From NCBI RefSeq assembly GCF_006345805.1, contig NC_042999.1:15686001-15750000 (forward strand): a stretch of 64,000 bases of DNA. Reading direction: 5' to 3'. Position 1 is the first letter of the stretch. Each line of letters begins with the position of its first letter. The translations under genes and the position numbers were made by a program. Positions 8,395-51,300 of the stretch are shown one piece after another. The notes beneath the pieces were generated by a model. That model worked only from the letters and a program-made list of their open reading frames with translations. It was not told where the DNA came from and did not search any database. The stretch is from Octopus sinensis. Its lineage: Eukaryota.

Positions 8395-10956
8395 AGCTAG
8401 GAGACAGGTTTATTTAGCCAGAGGGGAAGCAGATAAGAAAAAATTTGCCAATGTTCTGCGCCGTGAGGACCAAAGACTGGAGGTGTTTCGTGTTGCAAGA
8501 CAGTGTGTGAGAGAGAATCGTGATGTGGTAGGAGAGAAATGTGTTCGCATGGAAGATGGTTCACTTGCGCTAAATGAGGATGCAAAGAGAGAGGTCTGGA
8601 GATGCCACTATGAAAGGTTGCTGAATGAAGAAAATGAATGGGATAAAGAGAGTCTGCCGAATGTTGACCCAACAGAGGGACCAGCTATCCGAGTTGATAG
8701 TTCTGTGGTAGCTAAGGCAATTAGAAGCATGAAGACAGGGAAAGCCCCAGGCCCATCAGGAATCACTGCAGAGATGCTCAAAATGTCTGGTAGTGTTGGC
8801 TATAGCCTAGTCACCCATATAGTTAATCAGGTGATACACAAAGGGGTCATACCCAATGACTGGTGTAGCAGTATAATAGTCAACTGCTACAAAGGTAAAG
8901 GTGATGCCCTAGATACAAATAACTACAGAGGTATCAAGCTGTTGGACCAGGTGATGAAGGTTACGGAGAGGGTCATAGCTCAACTATTTAGAGAGAGAGT
9001 TAGTTTAAATGAGATGCAGTTTGGGTTTGTGCCAGGGAAAAGTACTACTGATGCTATATTCCTGGTAAGGCAGCTGCAGGAGAAATACCTAGCCAAAGAT
9101 AAGCCCCTGTACCTGGCTTTTGTTGACATGGAGAAAGCCTTCGACAGGGTCCCCCGATCCCTTATCTGGTGGGCAATGAGAAAACTAGGGATAGATGAAT
9201 GGTTAGTGAGAGCTGTGCGGGCCATGTATAGGGACGCCGCTAGTAGGGTGAGGGTTGGAAATGAGTACAGTGAAGAATTCCGGGTAGAGGTAGGGGTCCA
9301 CCAAGGCTCAGTACTCAGCCCCCTCCTATTTATCTTAGTCCTCCAGGCAATAACGGAGGAATTCAAGACAGGATGCCCTTGGGAGCTCCTCTATGCTGAT
9401 GACCTTGCTCTAATTGCTGAGTCGCTATCAGAACTGGAGGAGAAGTTTCAGGTGTGGAAACAAGGATTAGAATCGAAGGGCCTCAGAGTCAATCTAGCTA
9501 AAACCAAAGTCGTAATCAGTAGGAAGGTAGACAAATCACAAACACCTTCAGGTAGATGGCCCTGCTCGATCTGTAGAAAAGGTGTAGGTAGAAACTCTAT
9601 AAGATGCACCAAGTGTAAGCTATGGACACATAAGAGATGCAGCAATGTCAAAGGAAGGCTAACTAGGAAGATGGTTTTTGTATGTGGCAGATGCTCAGGA
9701 ACAATAAACACTGAAAATGCTCTGAGACCAACTTCCGTCACTTTCCAGGGAGAAAAACTAGAAATAGTTGATAGTTTCCGTTACCTAGGTGACCAAGTCA
9801 GCAGCGGGGGCGGGTGTGCTGAAAGTGTAACTGCTAGAGTAAGAATAGCTTGGGCAAAGTTCAGAGAGCTCTTACCTCTGCTGGTGACAAAAGGCCTCTC
9901 GCACAGAGTGAAAGGCAGACTGTATGATGCGTGTGTACGAACAGCCATGCTACATGGCAGTGAAACATGGGCCGTGACTGCTGAGGATATGCGTAAGCTC
10001 GCTAGAAATGAAGCCAGTATGCTCCGATGGATGTGTAATGCCGGTACTCACACTCGGCAGAGTGTAAGTACCTTGAGAGAAAAGCTGGACCTAAGAAGCA
10101 TCAGTTGTGGTGTGCAAGAGAGACGTTTGCGCTGGTATGGTCATGTGGCGAGAATGGATGAAGATAGTTGCGTGAAAAAGTGCCACACCCTAGCGGTTGA
10201 GGGAACCTGTGGAAGAGGCAGACCCAGGAAAACCTGGGACAAGGTGGTGAAGCACGACCTTCGAACTTTAGGTCTCACTGAGGAAATGACTAGAGACCGA
10301 GACCTCTGGAAGTGTGCTGTGCGCGAGAAGACCCGGCAGGACAAGTGAGTCCACAACCCGTGGCCTTCTACATGGGATGGAGCCAGCCTACGTATGCATA
10401 CCTTCCCTTCTTGGGACACAAAACTCTACTTGTGAAGACGTGTTGAGGCAAGTGAGGATCAGAATCGAAATCGATCAATGGAAATTGCGGATGTGCTACC
10501 AGTGCCGGTGGCATGTCGAAACTCTGCTTGTGAAGACCCATTGAGGCAAGTGAGGATCAGAATCGAAATCGATCAATGGAAATCGATCAATGGAAATTGC
10601 AGATGTGTTACCAGTGCCGGTGGCATGTAAGAGAACTTTCCGTTTCGCGACCGTTGCCAGCACCGCCCCGTTTCGTGTCCATTGCCAGCCTCGCCTGGCC
10701 CTCGTGCCGGTGGCACATAAAAAGCACCATCCGTTCGTGGCCGTTTGCCAGCTCTGTCTGGCACCAGTGCGGGTGGCACGTAAAAAGCACCCACTACACT
10801 CACGGAGTGGTTGGCGTTAGGAAGGGCATCCAGCCATAGAAACACTGCCAGATTTGACTGGGCCTGATGAAGCCTTCTGGCTTCACAGACCCCAGTAGAA
10901 CCGTCCAACCCATGCTAGCATGGAAAACGGACGCTAAATGATGATGATGATGATGA
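8395..10956 (+). mobile_element. Young 5'-truncated RTE-clade LINE
   Basis: The direct repeat TGAGTTATCAA at 8384-8394 and 10957-10967 is a TSD. The element has a (GAT)n tail, an uninterrupted RT frame and a 3' UTR of about 600 bp. The endonuclease part is missing. Confidence 0.95.
8483..10348 (+). CDS. RTE LINE reverse transcriptase (truncated ORF2) with an embedded PHD-type zinc finger
   Basis: RT motifs present: NYRGIKLL, QFGFVPGKSTTDAIF, FVDMEKAFDRVP, GVHQGSVLSPLLF, LLYADD (9392-9403), FRYLGD, and the RTE C-terminal LRWYGHV...RGRPRKTW. A C4HC3 finger lies at 9563-9694. The frame is open from 8387. Confidence 0.95.
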   Translation: MFRVARQCVRENRDVVGEKCVRMEDGSLALNEDAKREVWRCHYERLLNEENEWDKESLPNVDPTEGPAIRVDSSVVAKAIRSMKTGKAPGPSGITAEMLKMSGSVGYSLVTHIVNQVIHKGVIPNDWCSSIIVNCYKGKGDALDTNNYRGIKLLDQVMKVTERVIAQLFRERVSLNEMQFGFVPGKSTTDAIFLVRQLQEKYLAKDKPLYLAFVDMEKAFDRVPRSLIWWAMRKLGIDEWLVRAVRAMYRDAASRVRVGNEYSEEFRVEVGVHQGSVLSPLLFILVLQAITEEFKTGCPWELLYADDLALIAESLSELEEKFQVWKQGLESKGLRVNLAKTKVVISRKVDKSQTPSGRWPCSICRKGVGRNSIRCTKCKLWTHKRCSNVKGRLTRKMVFVCGRCSGTINTENALRPTSVTFQGEKLEIVDSFRYLGDQVSSGGGCAESVTARVRIAWAKFRELLPLLVTKGLSHRVKGRLYDACVRTAMLHGSETWAVTAEDMRKLARNEASMLRWMCNAGTHTRQSVSTLREKLDLRSISCGVQERRLRWYGHVARMDEDSCVKKCHTLAVEGTCGRGRPRKTWDKVVKHDLRTLGLTEEMTRDRDLWKCAVREKTRQDK

Positions 10957-19399: not shown

Positions 19400-20300
19400 T
19401 GGGCATTCTATTCACTTCTGGTAGAATGAAATAAGTATCAGATGATTTATATTTAGATTAGAGAAGACTTTTCAAGAAGCCAGAGAGAAAATCTCCAAGT
19501 CCTATTGGGAGACAGATTCTATTTTGAATGTTTGCACAGAAATACCATGGAAAATGCTGGTCTTTTATCTCTAATTCTAGATAAGAATATTTCTTGATTG
19601 ACACAGTCAATATGACTGAAACTATTAATACATCATATTCTTAGAGTCTTTAGTCAGCAACTTGGCGAGGTTTGCAGAATAAATTGTGTCAATGAGTCCT
19701 TTTAGAGAAGTTCCATAAACAATTCGGTCAACCGTAGCAGCTTAACAAATGCCACAGAAATACTGGAAGTGCTAACTTGTTCTTTTTAGATTTGACAGCC
19801 CTTTAAAAACATCATCTTTCTTTTGATATTCACAAAACAAATAGTATCATAGGCTAGATATTTGAAGGCATGATGCTGGTGAAAATTCCTGTAGATACAG
19901 CATCTCTGATCCAGATAAGATGCAGCTTTACAAAAGACATCCTTATGGAGAACTGATTTGCTTCATTATTTAAAATTTCTTTTCTAACAACTTTAGTGGA
20001 GATTACTGAGCAGTTTTTAACTCGTAGAGAAGTGTCATAATTTTGAGAATCTTTCATAGCTATTTGACTGAAGTAAAAACTGGAGTTTTGTTTTCTTCAC
20101 TAGACTGAATCATGAATACATTTGCCGTTGTACATTTCAGCCATGAGACTTTTGATGTTACAGTCTATGATGCGATTTTGAAAAACTACTGTAATCAAGA
20201 ATAAACTCCATGATCAATTCTTTGATTCTCTGACAGTCATGTGCTACGATTTCATTGACTTTCTTTTTTCTTAAGCTGATAAAATGTTATTGTAGGTGGT
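19400..20300 (-). pseudogene. Possible decayed Penelope-like RT fragment
   Basis: With frameshifts it gives YVD(E)L-like, IDTIYSANL, YLELEIK, DKR and FLC-NIQNRI-IG-EI, in the order expected for a Penelope RT C-terminal region. It is heavily degenerate. Confidence 0.35.
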
Positions 20301-22149
20301 GCACTTACAAATAGTGTCAACATTTTAGTGAGGAATAGAATTCACAAGGAGTCTTGGATAAAAGTCACTAGTTGCTTCCTAAGTAACTCTATACTCTGAA
20401 AATATAAAAAGCCAACGCTTAATGATGTATAAAGCCTCAGAACGTGTCAGTACCACACTGAACTTTTAGGGTCATAGTCCAAATTTTATACTGATAATAG
20501 CAGTTTTGGTAAATTAACTTGATGTGTGAATGACCCAAGATGAAAATTAGTTTAAATCAAACTTTAATTTACTAAAAGTATCACTGACATCTATGGCTTG
20601 CTGTAGAGATAGGAGTTCACAAGAGTAAGTATAGCAGTAGTAGTCAGTAGTAACTGTAGTATCATATAGAGATACAACCATTACTGTTGTTATTATAATA
20701 CAGCATTACTTCGATAGGGTTATTACAGAATGATAGGAAAGAAGCAAGAGAGTGACAATAAGGAAAATTAGAGAACAAGAAGTAGTAAAACGTGAGAGAA
20801 AGAGATAGGTAGTTGCACAATGCCTAAAAGATAGGACTTCAGAGAGAACAGTAACTAAATAAGCTCCAAAGTAATGTTACTCCACTTTCTTTTTGTAATT
20901 TCTGTACAAGTGATGACATCACACACATACACACACTCATGCACACACACGTGCATACACACACACACAATGTTGCATTTAACAAATTAATGCCTAAAAG
21001 TATATGAAGCATATTCTAAGTATTGTTTTAATCATTTACTTTGTTATTCCATTAATTCTCTCATGTGAAGGATATCATTAGTTTTAATTCTAAACTCACA
21101 AGTAATATAGCTAGCAATTTTAGTTTGAAAGAAGTCTATTGTAAGAAAAATAGTTTCAATCTGTTGAAATGGATGATTACATTTCTTTACATTTTTGTTG
21201 AATACACTTAAATAACTAATAATGTATGAAAAATCTTCAAAAGATTTCTTTTTTTCTAAATATAAGAAGAGTTATTTGTGAAATCTAAGCAAGGAAGAAA
21301 GAAAAACACAGAAAATTGAACTAAAGTAAGCTATAAAGTTCACTTTGATTTAAATAAGCTATAAAGCTTACTTTGGTTATAAATTTACTACTTTTTCTCA
21401 TAGAAACATAAAATGGTATAAAGAGAATTAAAAGAAAGCATATCTAGAAGTTGTTTAAGAAAAAAAAGTTTCCCCAACTTTATAATAAAGTGTGTCATAA
21501 AACGACCTGAAGTATAAAAGAAGAAATATATAGGGGATAGATGCATTTACTGGTGGCTGGATTTGTAGAAAAATAAAGACAATTTTAATTTTCATTTGAG
21601 TGGGGGTCAACAAAATATGGCCCCTATAATTACTTCAGTTGATTCGATGAACTATATCCAAAGCCTTCATAAAAATGTTTCTCTGCTTAAATAAGAAAGC
21701 AATAATAAGCTTCAATATTAATTTTATTCAGAATGATGAAAAATATATACAGAAAGTAAAATGAAAAAAGAAAAAAGTTGTTATTGTCTTTTTTAAAATA
21801 AAAACTGTAAAAAGTATAAAATGAAAATAAATTACTTCAGTATTTTTTTATTATTGCTATCAGACGATTTATGTACTGAAGACAAAGAGAGTGGAAGTTA
21901 ACAGTGTGAAACAGATAAGGAAAGTATAAAGATGAGAGAGACAATAAAAAGAAAACAATAAAATGAGACCAACTCAATGAAAGAAGAAAGATAAATTTAT
22001 TTTCTTAGAGAACTTGTTTCAATCATTTAATATAAACTTAGAAATATAATCGGAAAATTCCATGCAGCTGATTAGTTTTTAAATTTTCTTTCTTTAAAAC
22101 AGAGGTTTCAGTTAGAATACAATCTTCATTTGTCTATTATACTGGATGA

Positions 22150-23260
22150 TGACTATGGCATCATTTTATGCATATGTCTAAGAGTTGTCGACAATTCCAA
22201 CGCAGATAGCTTTTGAGAGAGTGCTTGCCAAGACATGTGAGTGTGTCAATGGTTTGAAGAGTATGATCTTTCATTATAAAAGCAGGTGGTGAAATAATAT
22301 TCCTTGTGAGGTGCTGGTTGGTACATCAGTTTTCTTTTTGTACAGATGGTGAGGCCAAAGTCATAGAAGGCAGAAAAGGATAAGTTATACACTGCTGCAT
22401 CTCAGACTCTGGGCCTGCACCAACGGTCTCTCATGACTTTCATTTAATGCTAAAGGCTTTTAGGTAGATCATTAAGGTATCTGTGTAGTGCTTGCACTGT
22501 CCACTGCCCAAACATTCCACAACTACCAACTCAATGTAGAAACGATATTTTGGAAGCTGTTCATCATCCACTCTGGCGATGTGACCAGACAAGTGCAACT
22601 AGGTCTCACGCAGGAAAGTGGGAATGCATACTGGTTAGTACAAATGCGTTTGGACAACTTGGTGTCTGGGAACTTGTGCAGCCAATGAATTTGCAGTATT
22701 TTAGACTGACAACTCAGACGAAAATTCATTAGGCTTCTTTACAAGCCTGCTATAAACAGACCATATTTTACAGGATAAAATTTTGAAAAACAACAGCTTT
22801 TGTAGATTTTCATCTTGGTTTAGCTGTTGAGCCCTCACACATCAAAACATTCTTACGAAGTGTACTGAGGGTAACACTGGCTTCGGTATTTCTGTAACTG
22901 ACTTCAACGTTGTATTTCTGAAAGGAGTACTGCCAAGGTAGGTGAATGTTTCAATGATCAGTAGAGCCCAATTTTTGAGTGTAGGTGCGAGTACCACATG
23001 TTCCTTGTGAAGGAATGGTTAATAACTGGCTTTAGTTTCTGAGCAGATAATGAGGTCAGATTCATAGAATACAGAGAAGAACCTGTTCATGTGCTGCTGC
23101 ATCTCAGACTCTGAGTCTGCATTGAGAGCAGTCATTCATAAACAGGAACTCACACACTGTGTCCTCCTCCATCTTAGAGTCATCCAGGAGTCTTTTCAGG
23201 TTGAAGAACTTCTCAATTCACAATCATATGGTGAAGCCATCCTCATCTTGAAATCCATAA
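22150..23260 (-). pseudogene. Decayed RTE (BovB-like) RT/C-terminal relic
   Basis: Fragments include KFFNLKRLLDDSK, ETFTYLGST and GQCKHYTDTL (cf. GGQKKRYKDTLK), interrupted by stops and frameshifts. Confidence 0.7.
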
Positions 23261-23418
23261 GTTAGCATGAATTAGAACACAATAAGAATTATCCAAATAT
23301 GCATATTAAAAAAATTACAATAAATCAATAAATATGTTAGTAAACATTCAAATACTGATATATTTTTTTAATAATTGTCTACTGTAAAATATAGAAGAAA
23401 TTATAATTATTTTCTGAC

Positions 23419-23641
23419 CTGGATATTGGACAGCCAACAATTCTGTTAAGCATTACTGTGGTGTTCATGGTTTCAATATCTTTAACAATGACATTAGTAA
23501 AACCTATTACTTCTTCTAGAAGAATGTTCAAGACATGACTGACAATTTGATGCGATGCCCTCATGCTGCTCTCAATTACAATTGGAGCTTTATGGTTGTT
23601 TGCATTGTTCTGAAAGCTTCGTCGATAACGAGCCATTAAAT
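23419..23641 (-). CDS. Internal coding exon (223 nt, phase 1 to phase 2) of a minus-strand host gene; resembles the N-terminus of a type II periplasmic-binding (ProX/OpuAC-like) domain
   Basis: The acceptor is ctatttattttcAG and the donor is AG|GTCAGA. The frame is open: (D)LMARYRRSFQNNANNHKAPIVIESSMRASHQIVSHVLNILLEEVIGFTNVIVKDIETMNTTVMLNRIVGCPIS(R), with non-repetitive protein-like composition. The I-x-I...S-H-x-I...ILLEE-x-IG pattern recalls the first strand and helix of betaine-binding domains. The family call is from memory of motifs only. Confidence 0.7.
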
Positions 23642-23999
23642 CTGAAAATAAATAGAAATAATCATGAGAAAATGTTCTACACATTAAGTAGGAAGTACAA
23701 CTAATAATTAATATCTTATATATCCTTAGGTTTCTTTAACGAAGCATAAATGTTAATGCCTGGGAAAACATTAGCAATTGAATAATTAAGTGATAATATG
23801 AAAGAAATATATACAAGATAATTAGGCTTCATAAGAAATTAATATGTGAAAAATGCACCATGACATAACGTGCAGAATGAAAATAGAATATTGGACAAAG
23901 AAATAAGATGTATTAATTAATAAAACTATTATTAGCTTCATCTTTAGAATGTGTATTTACAATGTTTATATTTACTCTATACGTGAATCTCTGGCATGC

Positions 24000-43396: not shown

Positions 43397-44020
43397 TCAT
43401 CAACAACATCATTCAAAATCCATCTTCCATGGGTTGGATGGTTTGACAGGAGCCTGCCAGGTAGAAGACAACACACCAAGCTACTGTGTCTGTTTTGGCA
43501 TGGGTTTTATGGCTGGATGCCCTTCCTAACACCAACCACCCTGCAGGATGGACTAAGTGCTTTTTACATGGCTCCAGCACAAACGAGGTCTGTTTTGGCA
43601 TGGTTTTATGGCTGGATGCCCTTCCTAACACCAACCACCCTGCAGGATGGACTAAGTGCTTTTTACATGGCTCCAGCACAAACGAGGTCTGTTTTGGCAT
43701 GGTTTTATGGCTGGATGCCCTTCCTAACACCAACCACCCTGCAGGATGGACTAAGTGCTTTTTACATGGCTCCAGCACAAACGAGGTCTGTTTTGGCATG
43801 TTTTTATGGCTGGATGCCCTTCCTAACACCAACCACCCTGCAGGATGGACTAAGTGCTTTTTACATGGCTCCAGCACAAACGAGGTCTGTTTTGGCATGG
43901 TTTTTAGAGCTGGATGCCCTTCTCAATGCCAACCACTTCACCGTGTAGACTTGATGCTTTTTAAATGGTACTTTTTAAATGCCACCACCACTGGCAGGGT
44001 CACCAAGTAACTTGCAAGAA
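43397..44020 (-). mobile_element. RTE 3'-tail-related element carrying a 99-bp tandem array
   Basis: The CAT-rich end, TTCCATGGGTTGGATGGTTTGAC and GCTGGATGCCCTTCCTAAC match the reverse complement of the LINE tail. Confidence 0.8.
43491..43940. repeat. Tandem repeat, 99-bp unit, about 4.4 near-identical copies
   Basis: TGTTTTGGCA recurs at 43491, 43591, 43690, 43789 and 43888. Confidence 0.95.
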
Positions 44021-50141: not shown

Positions 50142-51300
50142 TTATGTCATCCCATAAATAATGCAGTCTTTTATACTTCTTTTATTTTTCAAAATTAAGA
50201 TAAACAAAGTTCTTTTTTAATCTAACATATACTCTCCTTCAATTTCTACAATGATTTTCTGTCTATCTGGTAGTCTTGTAAGGCCCCTTCTTCCAAAATT
50301 CACTTGTCCATGATGAAAAATACTTCTCTTCTGACCTCGTCTGCAAAATTCATATTTTTTCCATTTGAATGATTTTGAAGACTGCAGAATAAATGATAAT
50401 CAGTTGGGTCAATGTCCGGCAAATATGATGGGTGGAGCATCATTTCCCATTCAAACTGCTCTAGCCTTTGGAATGTCATCCTTGCTGTATGTGGCTGAGC
50501 ATTATCCTTATGGAAGAACACCTTTCATCTTGAAACCAAAGATGGTTGTTTTTCTTCTAGTGCTGACTTAAGCAGCTCAAGCTGCTTCCTTTGTTATCAT
50601 TCGGTTTGGACTTTAAAATTCTAAGTGGACTAAACCTTTCATATCCCACAAAACAGATAAGAACACCTTACATATCTTCTTTAGTCTGAGGTGCTGGTGT
50701 TTTTCTTTTCACTACCCACTGTCTCAGGTACTTGACATTTTTATTGAGAACCCATTTCTTGTCACCAGTCACTATTCAGGCCCCAAAAAAGTCATGAGAC
50801 GTGACAGAAAAGAAGAGCACAATTTCAGTCTGTGTGCACGATTAGACTTGGAAAGTTTGTGAGGAACCCATTGTCTCAACTTGCTGACTTTTCTGATGCC
50901 ACACAGATATTGATGAATGGTTGAATAACCAAATCCAAGCTTCTCTGATACTGATAGTTCCTCAACACTTACGATGGGAGTTTGTTATAGTAACTTGATG
51001 CAAGTAGTTTATCCTGTCCCCTTCTGATTTTTAGTTCATGCAACTGAAAAAACTGCATTAGTTATGAGATGACTCAGTATATATCCACATGGCTCTAATG
51101 TTGGTCAAAACAAATCATATATGTTTAATAACACAAATTATTGTTGATACTAAATGACTATCAAACAGCAGGAATTAGGGAATCATGTTAAAAGTTGGTT
51201 TAAAACTTATGATGAACTTTGCACAGAGGTAGATTATTTTAAATTTCATGATTATGAAATGAAATTTTCGATGTTTAATTAATTGCATAGATAAGAGGGA
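50142..51300 (-). pseudogene. Decayed near-full-length mariner (D,D34D) transposase
   Basis: Motifs present: QWVPHKL, VTGDKKWV, WDMKG, HKDNAQPH and HPSYLPDIDPTDYHLFCSLQNH. A TIR-like TATTATGTCATCCCATAAATAATGC is at 50140. The upper boundary is approximate. Confidence 0.85.

Follow-up and report, generated by a model that had tools for sequence, protein, structure and literature searches.

Within a 64,000-nucleotide stretch of the Octopus sinensis genome (NCBI RefSeq assembly GCF_006345805.1, contig NC_042999.1, positions 15,686,001 to 15,750,000; referred to here as the window), we analysed a 223-nt coding exon at positions 23419-23641, which very probably is a functional internal exon of the octopus gene for a Venus kinase receptor (VKR), corresponding to exon 2. 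VKRs, known since 2003, are invertebrate receptor tyrosine kinases that cross the membrane once. The exon itself would be an ordinary functional exon of this known receptor family; what is new is a second domain of binding-protein type in VKRs, apparently not described before, the beginning of which the exon is predicted to encode.

A conserved coding exon on the minus strand

The exon was read directly in the window, where it lies on the minus strand from 23641 to 23419 in the context ...ttatttctatttattttcAG|ATTTAATGGCT...ATATCCAG|GTcagaaa. The initial annotation of this region had described a spliceable exon of 223 nt without stating its strand, and it is present as described, with both the acceptor and the donor intact. 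The 3' splice site of the upstream intron (23642-23665, minus strand), also read directly, is made up of the polypyrimidine tract ttatttctatttattttc and an AG at 23643-23642, and the donor GTCAGA of the downstream intron occupies positions 23413-23418 of the same strand. The open frame starts at 23639 and extends over 73 codons (LMARYRRSFQNNANNHKAPIVIESSMRASHQIVSHVLNILLEEVIGFTNVIVKDIETMNTTVMLNRIVGCPIS); the two other frames contain 6-8 stops each. The exon is entered in phase 1 and left in phase 2, and its 3' end reads ...GGC TGT CCA ATA TCC AG|gtcaga. The length of the open frame is unremarkable in itself, since the window, which is AT-rich (G+C about 32%) and full of microsatellites and repeats, contains 13 stop-to-stop open reading frames (ORFs) of at least 118 codons. 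No second copy of the exon was found in the window, so it is single-copy there. It showed no excess of RNA structure (z = -0.68) and no Rfam match.

What sets the exon apart from chance is its conservation. A related contig, L001 (a Logan contig of 4.66 kb from SRR11869384, found through a 101-aa ORF in a word-indexed protein search), was aligned by BLAST with positions 19425-23822 of the window at 85.7% identity, or 81% outside the exon when gaps are counted. Inside the exon, 221 of the 223 nucleotides are identical (binomial P = 5e-18). Both differences are synonymous third-position changes (TCG/TCA and GTA/GTT), and no non-synonymous change was found. Apart from these two positions, identity with L001 is unbroken from 23665, in the polypyrimidine tract, through the donor, and farther upstream it falls to about 85%. 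It is because of this conservation (221/223, against about 81-86% in the flanks), and not because of the length of its ORF, that the exon stands beyond chance; it is real and under purifying selection. We also noticed that the first ~150 nt of the downstream intron (window 23270-23409, minus strand) are about 96% identical to L001, well over the background, and this conserved intron start may be a splicing or regulatory element.

Homologues of the exon and the architecture of their genes

Word-indexed protein searches with the exon and with the N-terminal domain of a Tubulanus homologue (see below) as queries returned almost nothing, the index being poor in animal proteins. A HMMER search of 1.84e9 protein representatives with the exon peptide gave 23 matches at E<1e-3. 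Most of them are exon-sized ORFs in animal genomic contigs, 34-53% identical to the query, that end a few residues past a Gly-Cys (GC) motif. A profile search added about 20 further exon-sized ORFs, including a large subfamily (...KRHFKLYGDSISLLPLKLSYSRRASHQISTHVLRILLEEVLGYEDV...) found in many assemblies of the European Nucleotide Archive (ENA). Two of the 23 HMMER matches are annotated proteins: XP_074645062 (P0022; 1353 aa, "uncharacterized protein") from the nemertean Tubulanus polymorphus and P0015 (308 aa, "hypothetical protein") from the bivalve Solemya velum.

The exon aligns with residues 38-95 of the Tubulanus protein (43% identity, E 2.7e-9) and spans residues ~28-96 of an N-terminal domain of about 370 aa, referred to below as the N-domain. 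The order of elements in this protein is a signal-peptide-like N-terminus, the N-domain, an ANF_receptor (flytrap) domain (residues 416-766, Pfam E 1e-52), a hydrophobic transmembrane (TM) segment and a PK_Tyr_Ser-Thr kinase domain (905-1168, Pfam E 8e-89). The kinase is nearest to IGF1R and the insulin receptor (3e-86), and the solved kinase of Schistosoma mansoni VKR2 (7zvs) was matched at 7e-79; the best PDB matches of the flytrap are GABA-B R1/R2 (1.7e-44). The kinase motifs GxGxxG, HRDxAxRN, DFG, YY and PVRWMAPE were also read in the sequence. A GABA-B-like flytrap, a TM segment and an insulin-receptor-like kinase with the YY and PVRWMAPE motifs, as seen here, are the hallmarks of VKRs (PMC2680970, PMC5601475).

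The same order was recovered elsewhere. In seven of the eight homologue loci (Tubulanus, Solemya or L003, L005, L006, L007, L009 and L010) a flytrap comes after the N-domain, and in Tubulanus, Solemya and L007 the tyrosine kinase is visible too; the eighth locus, L004, stops within the N-domain. In L005, L006, L009 and L010 the N-domain passes directly into the start of the flytrap (...IYLGGMFP...), and L007 (GCA_018292915.2) has a 1136-aa flytrap and kinase gene downstream of the exon. In Solemya, a 1043-aa model with ANF_receptor and kinase domains begins 47 bp after the 308-aa model, on the same strand. Between these two models (JBHNWI010000006.1, ~23900-23925) we observed a frameshift in a run of A, caused by an error of the assembly or by a genuine disruption.

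The exon structure of the Tubulanus gene was compared with that of the window. Its exon 1 encodes a signal peptide of 26 residues and ends in phase 1, and its exon 2 covers residues 27-99, leaving in phase 2 at ...GGC TGC ACG GAA GTT GA|gtaagt. In both the Tubulanus gene and the exon of the window the donor lies three codons and 2 nt after the GC motif, and the phases, 1 and 2, match. Intron phases and positions are thus shared across phyla, which identifies the exon at 23419-23641 as the counterpart of VKR exon 2. Judging from the homologues, the O. sinensis gene would run on into a flytrap and a kinase. These results bear out the proposal of the initial annotation that the exon belongs to a multi-exon gene, possibly for a receptor of kinase or cyclase type, since the homologues carry ANF_receptor, TM and tyrosine kinase segments downstream. 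Its description of the receptor as uncharacterised does not hold: the family is that of the VKRs, which are already known, and only the N-terminal domain seems to be undescribed.

The N-domain is related to OpuAC/ProX-type binding proteins

The exon had also been read as the start of a type II periplasmic-binding protein (PBP) domain of the OpuAC kind, and this view is supported by the position of the exon at residues ~28-96 of the N-domain together with several searches made with that domain. Pfam OpuAC matched the N-domain of Tubulanus at E 1.6e-5 (25.1 bits, gathering cutoff 21.2), that of L005 at 3.7e-4 and that of L006 at 6.9e-3. It was the sole significant Pfam family for these three, Tubulanus having in addition a weak match to NB glycoprotein (0.093). 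All three matches fall at profile positions ~161-256, and the matched part is the C-terminal third of the N-domain. A fourth family member, P0031, has OpuAC as a precomputed Pfam assignment, and NCBIfam matched the same region with ProX (2.6e-4) and with a choline-binding substrate-binding protein (7.5e-4).

A family profile built from 19 sequences (A2) was searched against PDB sequences. The best match was TmoX (4xz6, 4.4e-9), followed by Bacillus subtilis OpuAC (2.5e-4), lactococcal OpuAC (0.007) and, more weakly, OpuA (0.036), DmpX (0.063) and ChoX (0.11), so that the top six all belong to the OpuAC family. An earlier profile without the C-terminal columns (A1) found no relative in the PDB. 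In the A2 alignments, the C-terminal third of the animal N-domain was paired with residues 49-156 of B. subtilis OpuAC (2b4l) but with the C-terminal part of TmoX. Proteins of the OpuAC family differ by circular permutation of the order of their lobes.

Structure prediction pointed in the same direction. The second AlphaFold (AF2) model of a homologue's N-domain had a mean predicted local distance difference test score (pLDDT) of 67.7 and a predicted TM-score (pTM) of 0.52; its exon-encoded part, with pLDDT 73-86, was modelled as strand-helix-strand-helix. Foldseek gave eight PDB matches at E<=1e-3 and probability 1.00 for this model, all from the OpuAC family and extending over ~370-385 columns (DmpX 3.5e-6, TmoX 4.4e-6, OpuAC 1.9e-5, ProX 2.8e-5, ChoX 1.3e-4). 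A comparison by AlphaFold and Foldseek had been suggested in the initial annotation, with a PBP or OpuAC match plus a TM helix and an intracellular domain as the supporting outcome; such matches were obtained, though with low TM-scores on a moderate model, and the TM segment and intracellular kinase are present in the homologues. Because Pfam, NCBIfam, the profile search of the PDB and the fold agree, the homology of the N-domain to OpuAC-type binding proteins is established. That the exon forms the start of lobe I of this domain is the likely arrangement, as judged by collinearity and the model rather than by a direct match. No ABC transporter gene was found beside the N-domain in any locus examined; the domain is part of intron-bearing animal receptor genes.

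The resemblance of the exon to the bacterial motif ILEE-x-LGY-x-V, on which the first reading had been built, found no statistical support from the exon alone. By eye, the mature N-terminus of Escherichia coli ProX (...ALEKLGYTV...) does parallel IVIESSMRASHQIVSHVLNILLEEVIGFTNV of the exon, yet the peptide had no OpuAC match in Pfam or the PDB, and BLASTP of the exon peptide against E. coli ProX found nothing.

In the AF2 model of the homologue, the product of the exon, (x)LMARYRR...NRIVGCPIS(R/S) (23419-23641, minus strand), covers the first two strands and helices of the OpuAC-like N-domain, in the order beta1, alpha1, beta2, alpha2. Conservation within the exon family is highest in the loop S-x-R-x-S-H after strand beta1, encoded here by the codons S25-M-R27-A-S29-H30 (23550-23567, minus strand). 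Its S and R are invariant in two family alignments, and the second S is kept in at least 90% of the first alignment. At the start of helix alpha2 there is an N-x-T sequon, N59-T-T61 (23457-23465, minus strand), and most family members have N-x-[ST] at the same column (NAT, NTT, NIT or NAS). N59 is a probable site of N-glycosylation, and the sequon fits an extracellular location of the exon product. The GC motif near the end of the exon, with Cys70 (codon 23430-23432, minus strand), is kept in nearly all members; full-length members read on past the exon as ...GCxxxxC..., and Cys70 is probably disulfide-bonded with a Cys of the next exon. The in-frame ATG at 23634-23636 (minus strand; Met2) is unlikely to be a start codon because the homologues have a signal peptide upstream.

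As a working model, the 74 residues of the exon would make up the first strand-helix-strand-helix of lobe I in an extracellular N-domain of about 370 residues. As in the full-length homologues, this domain would directly precede a GABA-B-like Venus flytrap, followed by a TM helix and an insulin-receptor-like kinase. The N-domain may act as a second clamshell ligand-binding module that, by closing or by touching the flytrap, could modulate the geometry of the dimer and the activation of the kinase.

A candidate ligand site

TmoX contacts trimethylamine N-oxide (TMAO) via W55, W102, F106, E131, W177, F220 and W222 (PMC8918994). In the HMMER alignments, the family motif LEVW is paired with W102 of TmoX and the motif (I/L)LFFxWxPN with F220 and W222; LEVW and FFxW are kept in nearly all family members. 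The tryptophan of FFxW is also aligned with W188 of ProX, and W65 of ProX (AVNW) matches LEVW by position. A further motif, R-x-G-W-F, is aligned with R130-E131-D132-W133-W134 of TmoX, the TMAO-specific Glu being replaced by a hydrophobic residue. None of the aligned cage residues is encoded in the window; they belong to later exons. Neither W55 nor W177 of TmoX was paired with a residue of the family. The first cage tryptophan, W55 in TmoX and W35 in DmpX, is expected by residue number in the loop after the first strand (PMC8918994, PMC10030565); the loop of the window exon in that place is S-x-R-x-S-H, and its equivalence to the W55/W35 loop is by residue number only.

The conservation of two residues aligned with cage tryptophans, and of an adjacent F, may point to a small cationic ligand of the quaternary ammonium or sulfonium type. 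The cation-binding aromatic cage thus appears to be partly conserved. The sensing of an osmolyte, as proposed in the initial annotation, would be a possible role. Candidates for an onium ligand are glycine betaine, choline, TMAO, carnitine, homarine and dimethylsulfoniopropionate (DMSP), all of which serve marine invertebrates as major osmolytes and dietary cues. A tentative extension, about which we have considerable doubt, is that VKRs are dual sensors in which the N-domain binds a methylated onium compound besides the amino-acid-binding flytrap, or serves to dock peptides such as neuroparsin or ovary ecdysteroidogenic hormone (OEH).

Contrary observations and alternative explanations

Several observations weigh against assigning the exon to a VKR gene with an OpuAC-like N-domain. 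The exon peptide alone had no significant OpuAC match: the best family in Pfam was FliW (E 0.06, not significant), and in PDB sequences nothing was found below E 0.19. The N-domain of Solemya was without any Pfam match, and the Solemya copy also lacks the FFSW tryptophan (FFSPEPS). The AF2 models were moderate (pLDDT 60.6 for the first and 67.7 for the second), and the first, shallower one gave Foldseek E values of only 0.015-0.04. The Foldseek TM-scores were just 0.33-0.42, at an rmsd (root-mean-square deviation) of ~11 Å, and hhalign against the single sequence of E. coli ProX returned a probability of 14.8%. As to the gene itself, no further exon of it came up in the window when all six frames were searched by tblastn and hmmsearch with homologues from Tubulanus, Solemya and MetaClust, and its flytrap, TM segment and kinase were not detected in the 64 kb; the initial annotation had rightly stated that the rest of the gene is out of view. 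It follows that the next intron would be longer than 23.4 kb, and the corresponding intron measures 2.6 kb in Tubulanus, ~6-7 kb in L004 and L009 and 9.6 kb in Solemya. Upstream, no credible signal-peptide exon with a phase-1 donor was found in the window, the scan giving only candidates coded by microsatellites. A hydrophobic, signal-peptide-like ORF, MKLIIVLLINTSYFFVQY... (23825-23956, minus strand), is found 300 nt upstream of the exon and is similar to the start of P0002 (MLKLIVF...VQY). It was rejected as the first exon because it has no phase-1 donor and cannot be spliced in frame to the exon.

With the rest of the gene outside the window, the exon could come from a gene in which the same N-domain serves another output (a secreted binding protein, a class C G protein-coupled receptor (GPCR) or a guanylyl cyclase) or from a truncated VKR paralogue. 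Class C GPCRs with a fused OpuAC domain are indeed reported from fungi and other eukaryotes (PMC3251606, PMC3971589), and one MetaClust model (P0024, UPI0003931DB6) joins the N-domain to an aquaporin fragment. That model, however, consists of doubled N-domain pieces followed by the fragment (MIP) and looks like a chimeric prediction, not a real architecture. No other architecture was found among the family members, seven of the eight homologue loci enter a flytrap, and Tubulanus, Solemya and L007 show the kinase, so we consider these alternatives improbable. An origin as a conserved non-coding element, or as a decaying pseudo-exon that is open by chance, is suggested by the nucleotide-level conservation: synonymous sites are very conserved too, with two changes in 223 nt, and about 150 nt of the downstream intron are ~96% identical to L001, which indicates a constraint on the nucleotides that is not purely protein-coding. 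Against this, many distant invertebrates have a counterpart of this exon that is homologous at the protein level (34-53% identity), splice phases are kept from the nemertean to this genome, both substitutions in L001 are synonymous, and neither RNA structure nor an Rfam signal was detected in the exon; we regard such an origin as very unlikely.

It is also conceivable that the exon is a chance ORF, an ORF derived from a transposon, or a product of bacterial contamination or horizontal transfer, given that the window is rich in repeats and AT-rich chance ORFs, that the fold is of bacterial type, and that an intact reverse transcriptase of a long interspersed nuclear element (LINE) lies 13 kb away. 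Yet the exon is single-copy and has spliceosomal signals on both sides. A transposon origin of the peptide, which the initial annotation had named as an outcome that would refute it, was not obtained, no transposon family in Pfam being matched. All the relatives are exon-sized pieces of animal genes, and in several invertebrate assemblies the N-domain is fused to an animal flytrap and kinase. The single copy, the set of homologues, the splice phases of Tubulanus and the architecture in Solemya effectively refute these origins.

Comparison with known receptors and binding proteins

VKRs have been reported in molluscs, annelids, insects, flatworms, echinoderms and cnidarians (PMC3703292). Those named in the literature, SmVKR1 and SmVKR2 of S. 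mansoni, AmVKR of Apis, AaeVKR of Aedes and LgVKR of Lottia, have the same layout of flytrap, TM segment and kinase as the full-length homologues of the exon, and the same range, restricted to invertebrates. They differ in that the published accounts searched place all ligand binding (arginine, Ca2+, OEH) in the flytrap and do not mention an OpuAC-like N-domain. On comparison with the studied VKRs by their published descriptions, the ~370-aa N-domain is apparently undescribed in the VKR literature searched, and a literature search linking VKRs or tyrosine kinases to OpuAC or glycine betaine found nothing relevant. The position of the DFG motif of AmVKR, at residue 1031, suggests that insects have a similar N-terminal region of ~400 residues.

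The binding proteins TmoX (4xz6), DmpX (7yle), OpuAC (2b4l, 3l6h), ProX (3tmg) and ChoX (2reg) are similar to the animal N-domain across its whole length by profile and by the fold of a moderate model, and residues aligned with the cage residues W102, F220 and W222 of TmoX (equivalent to W65 and W188 of ProX) are conserved in the animal family. Whereas the bacterial OpuAC/ProX proteins serve ABC transporters, the animal N-domain is fused to a receptor kinase. It also exceeds them in length by ~80-100 residues and has Cys-rich insertions and sequons for N-glycosylation. In place of E131 of TmoX it has a hydrophobic residue, and the loop of the exon lacks an aromatic residue where, by residue number, W55/W35 would be expected.

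In the literature searched, the only eukaryotic receptors reported to carry OpuAC domains are class C GPCRs, in fungi and protists (PMC3251606, PMC3971589). These glutamate-family receptors likewise have an OpuAC-type ectodomain on a eukaryotic membrane receptor, but their output is a seven-transmembrane (7TM) domain and OpuAC replaces the flytrap, whereas in the VKR homologues the output is a tyrosine kinase and the OpuAC-like domain stands in tandem with the flytrap. Ionotropic glutamate receptors have type I and type II PBP modules in tandem in one ectodomain. The likeness is an analogy only: their type II module is of the SBP_bac_3/Lig_chan kind, the order is type I and then type II, and the output is a channel.

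In insects and flatworms, reproduction and growth are under the control of VKRs, and because these receptors are absent from vertebrates they are discussed as control targets. Which ligands act on them physiologically is a matter of debate, with L-arginine, Ca2+ and, in mosquitoes, the neurohormone OEH as proposals (PMC4522560). The N-domain, found in a nemertean, a bivalve and several invertebrate assemblies, is a testable candidate for an additional ligand site of VKRs. An onium-binding N-domain, if real, would couple the sensing of osmolytes or nutrients to insulin-like growth and reproduction signalling; if peptides such as neuroparsin or OEH were bound instead, they would dock on the N-domain rather than on the flytrap, where the literature puts them. 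For annotation, the split models of Solemya are parts of a VKR gene, and so in all likelihood is the exon; automated pipelines label such genes "uncharacterized" or "hypothetical".

Other elements in the window

Just downstream of the exon, at 22443-22598 (minus strand), there is a short ORF whose peptide, HLSGHIARVDDEQLPK, is like a LINE 3' tail; its identity to L001 is roughly that of the background. Remnants of a mariner/Tc1-like transposase with a broken frame were recognised by eye at 50220-50990 on the minus strand (HKDNAQPHTA..., HPSYLPDIDPTDYHLF); Pfam gave no match to them at E<0.1. At positions 43488-43936 a 99-nt unit is repeated in tandem (4.5 copies with 97% identity), and translation of the minus strand gives a repeating peptide without stops, MPKQTSFVLEPCKKHLVHPAGWLVLGRASSHK. 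Together with similar peptides elsewhere in the window, the array probably represents a repeat family like the short interspersed nuclear elements (SINEs). An intact 621-aa ORF for the reverse transcriptase of a retrotransposon without long terminal repeats (non-LTR) was found at 8483-10348 on the plus strand (Pfam RVT_1, E 3e-32). It lies antisense to the VKR exon, inside the stretch downstream of it, and is the G+C-richest part of the window.

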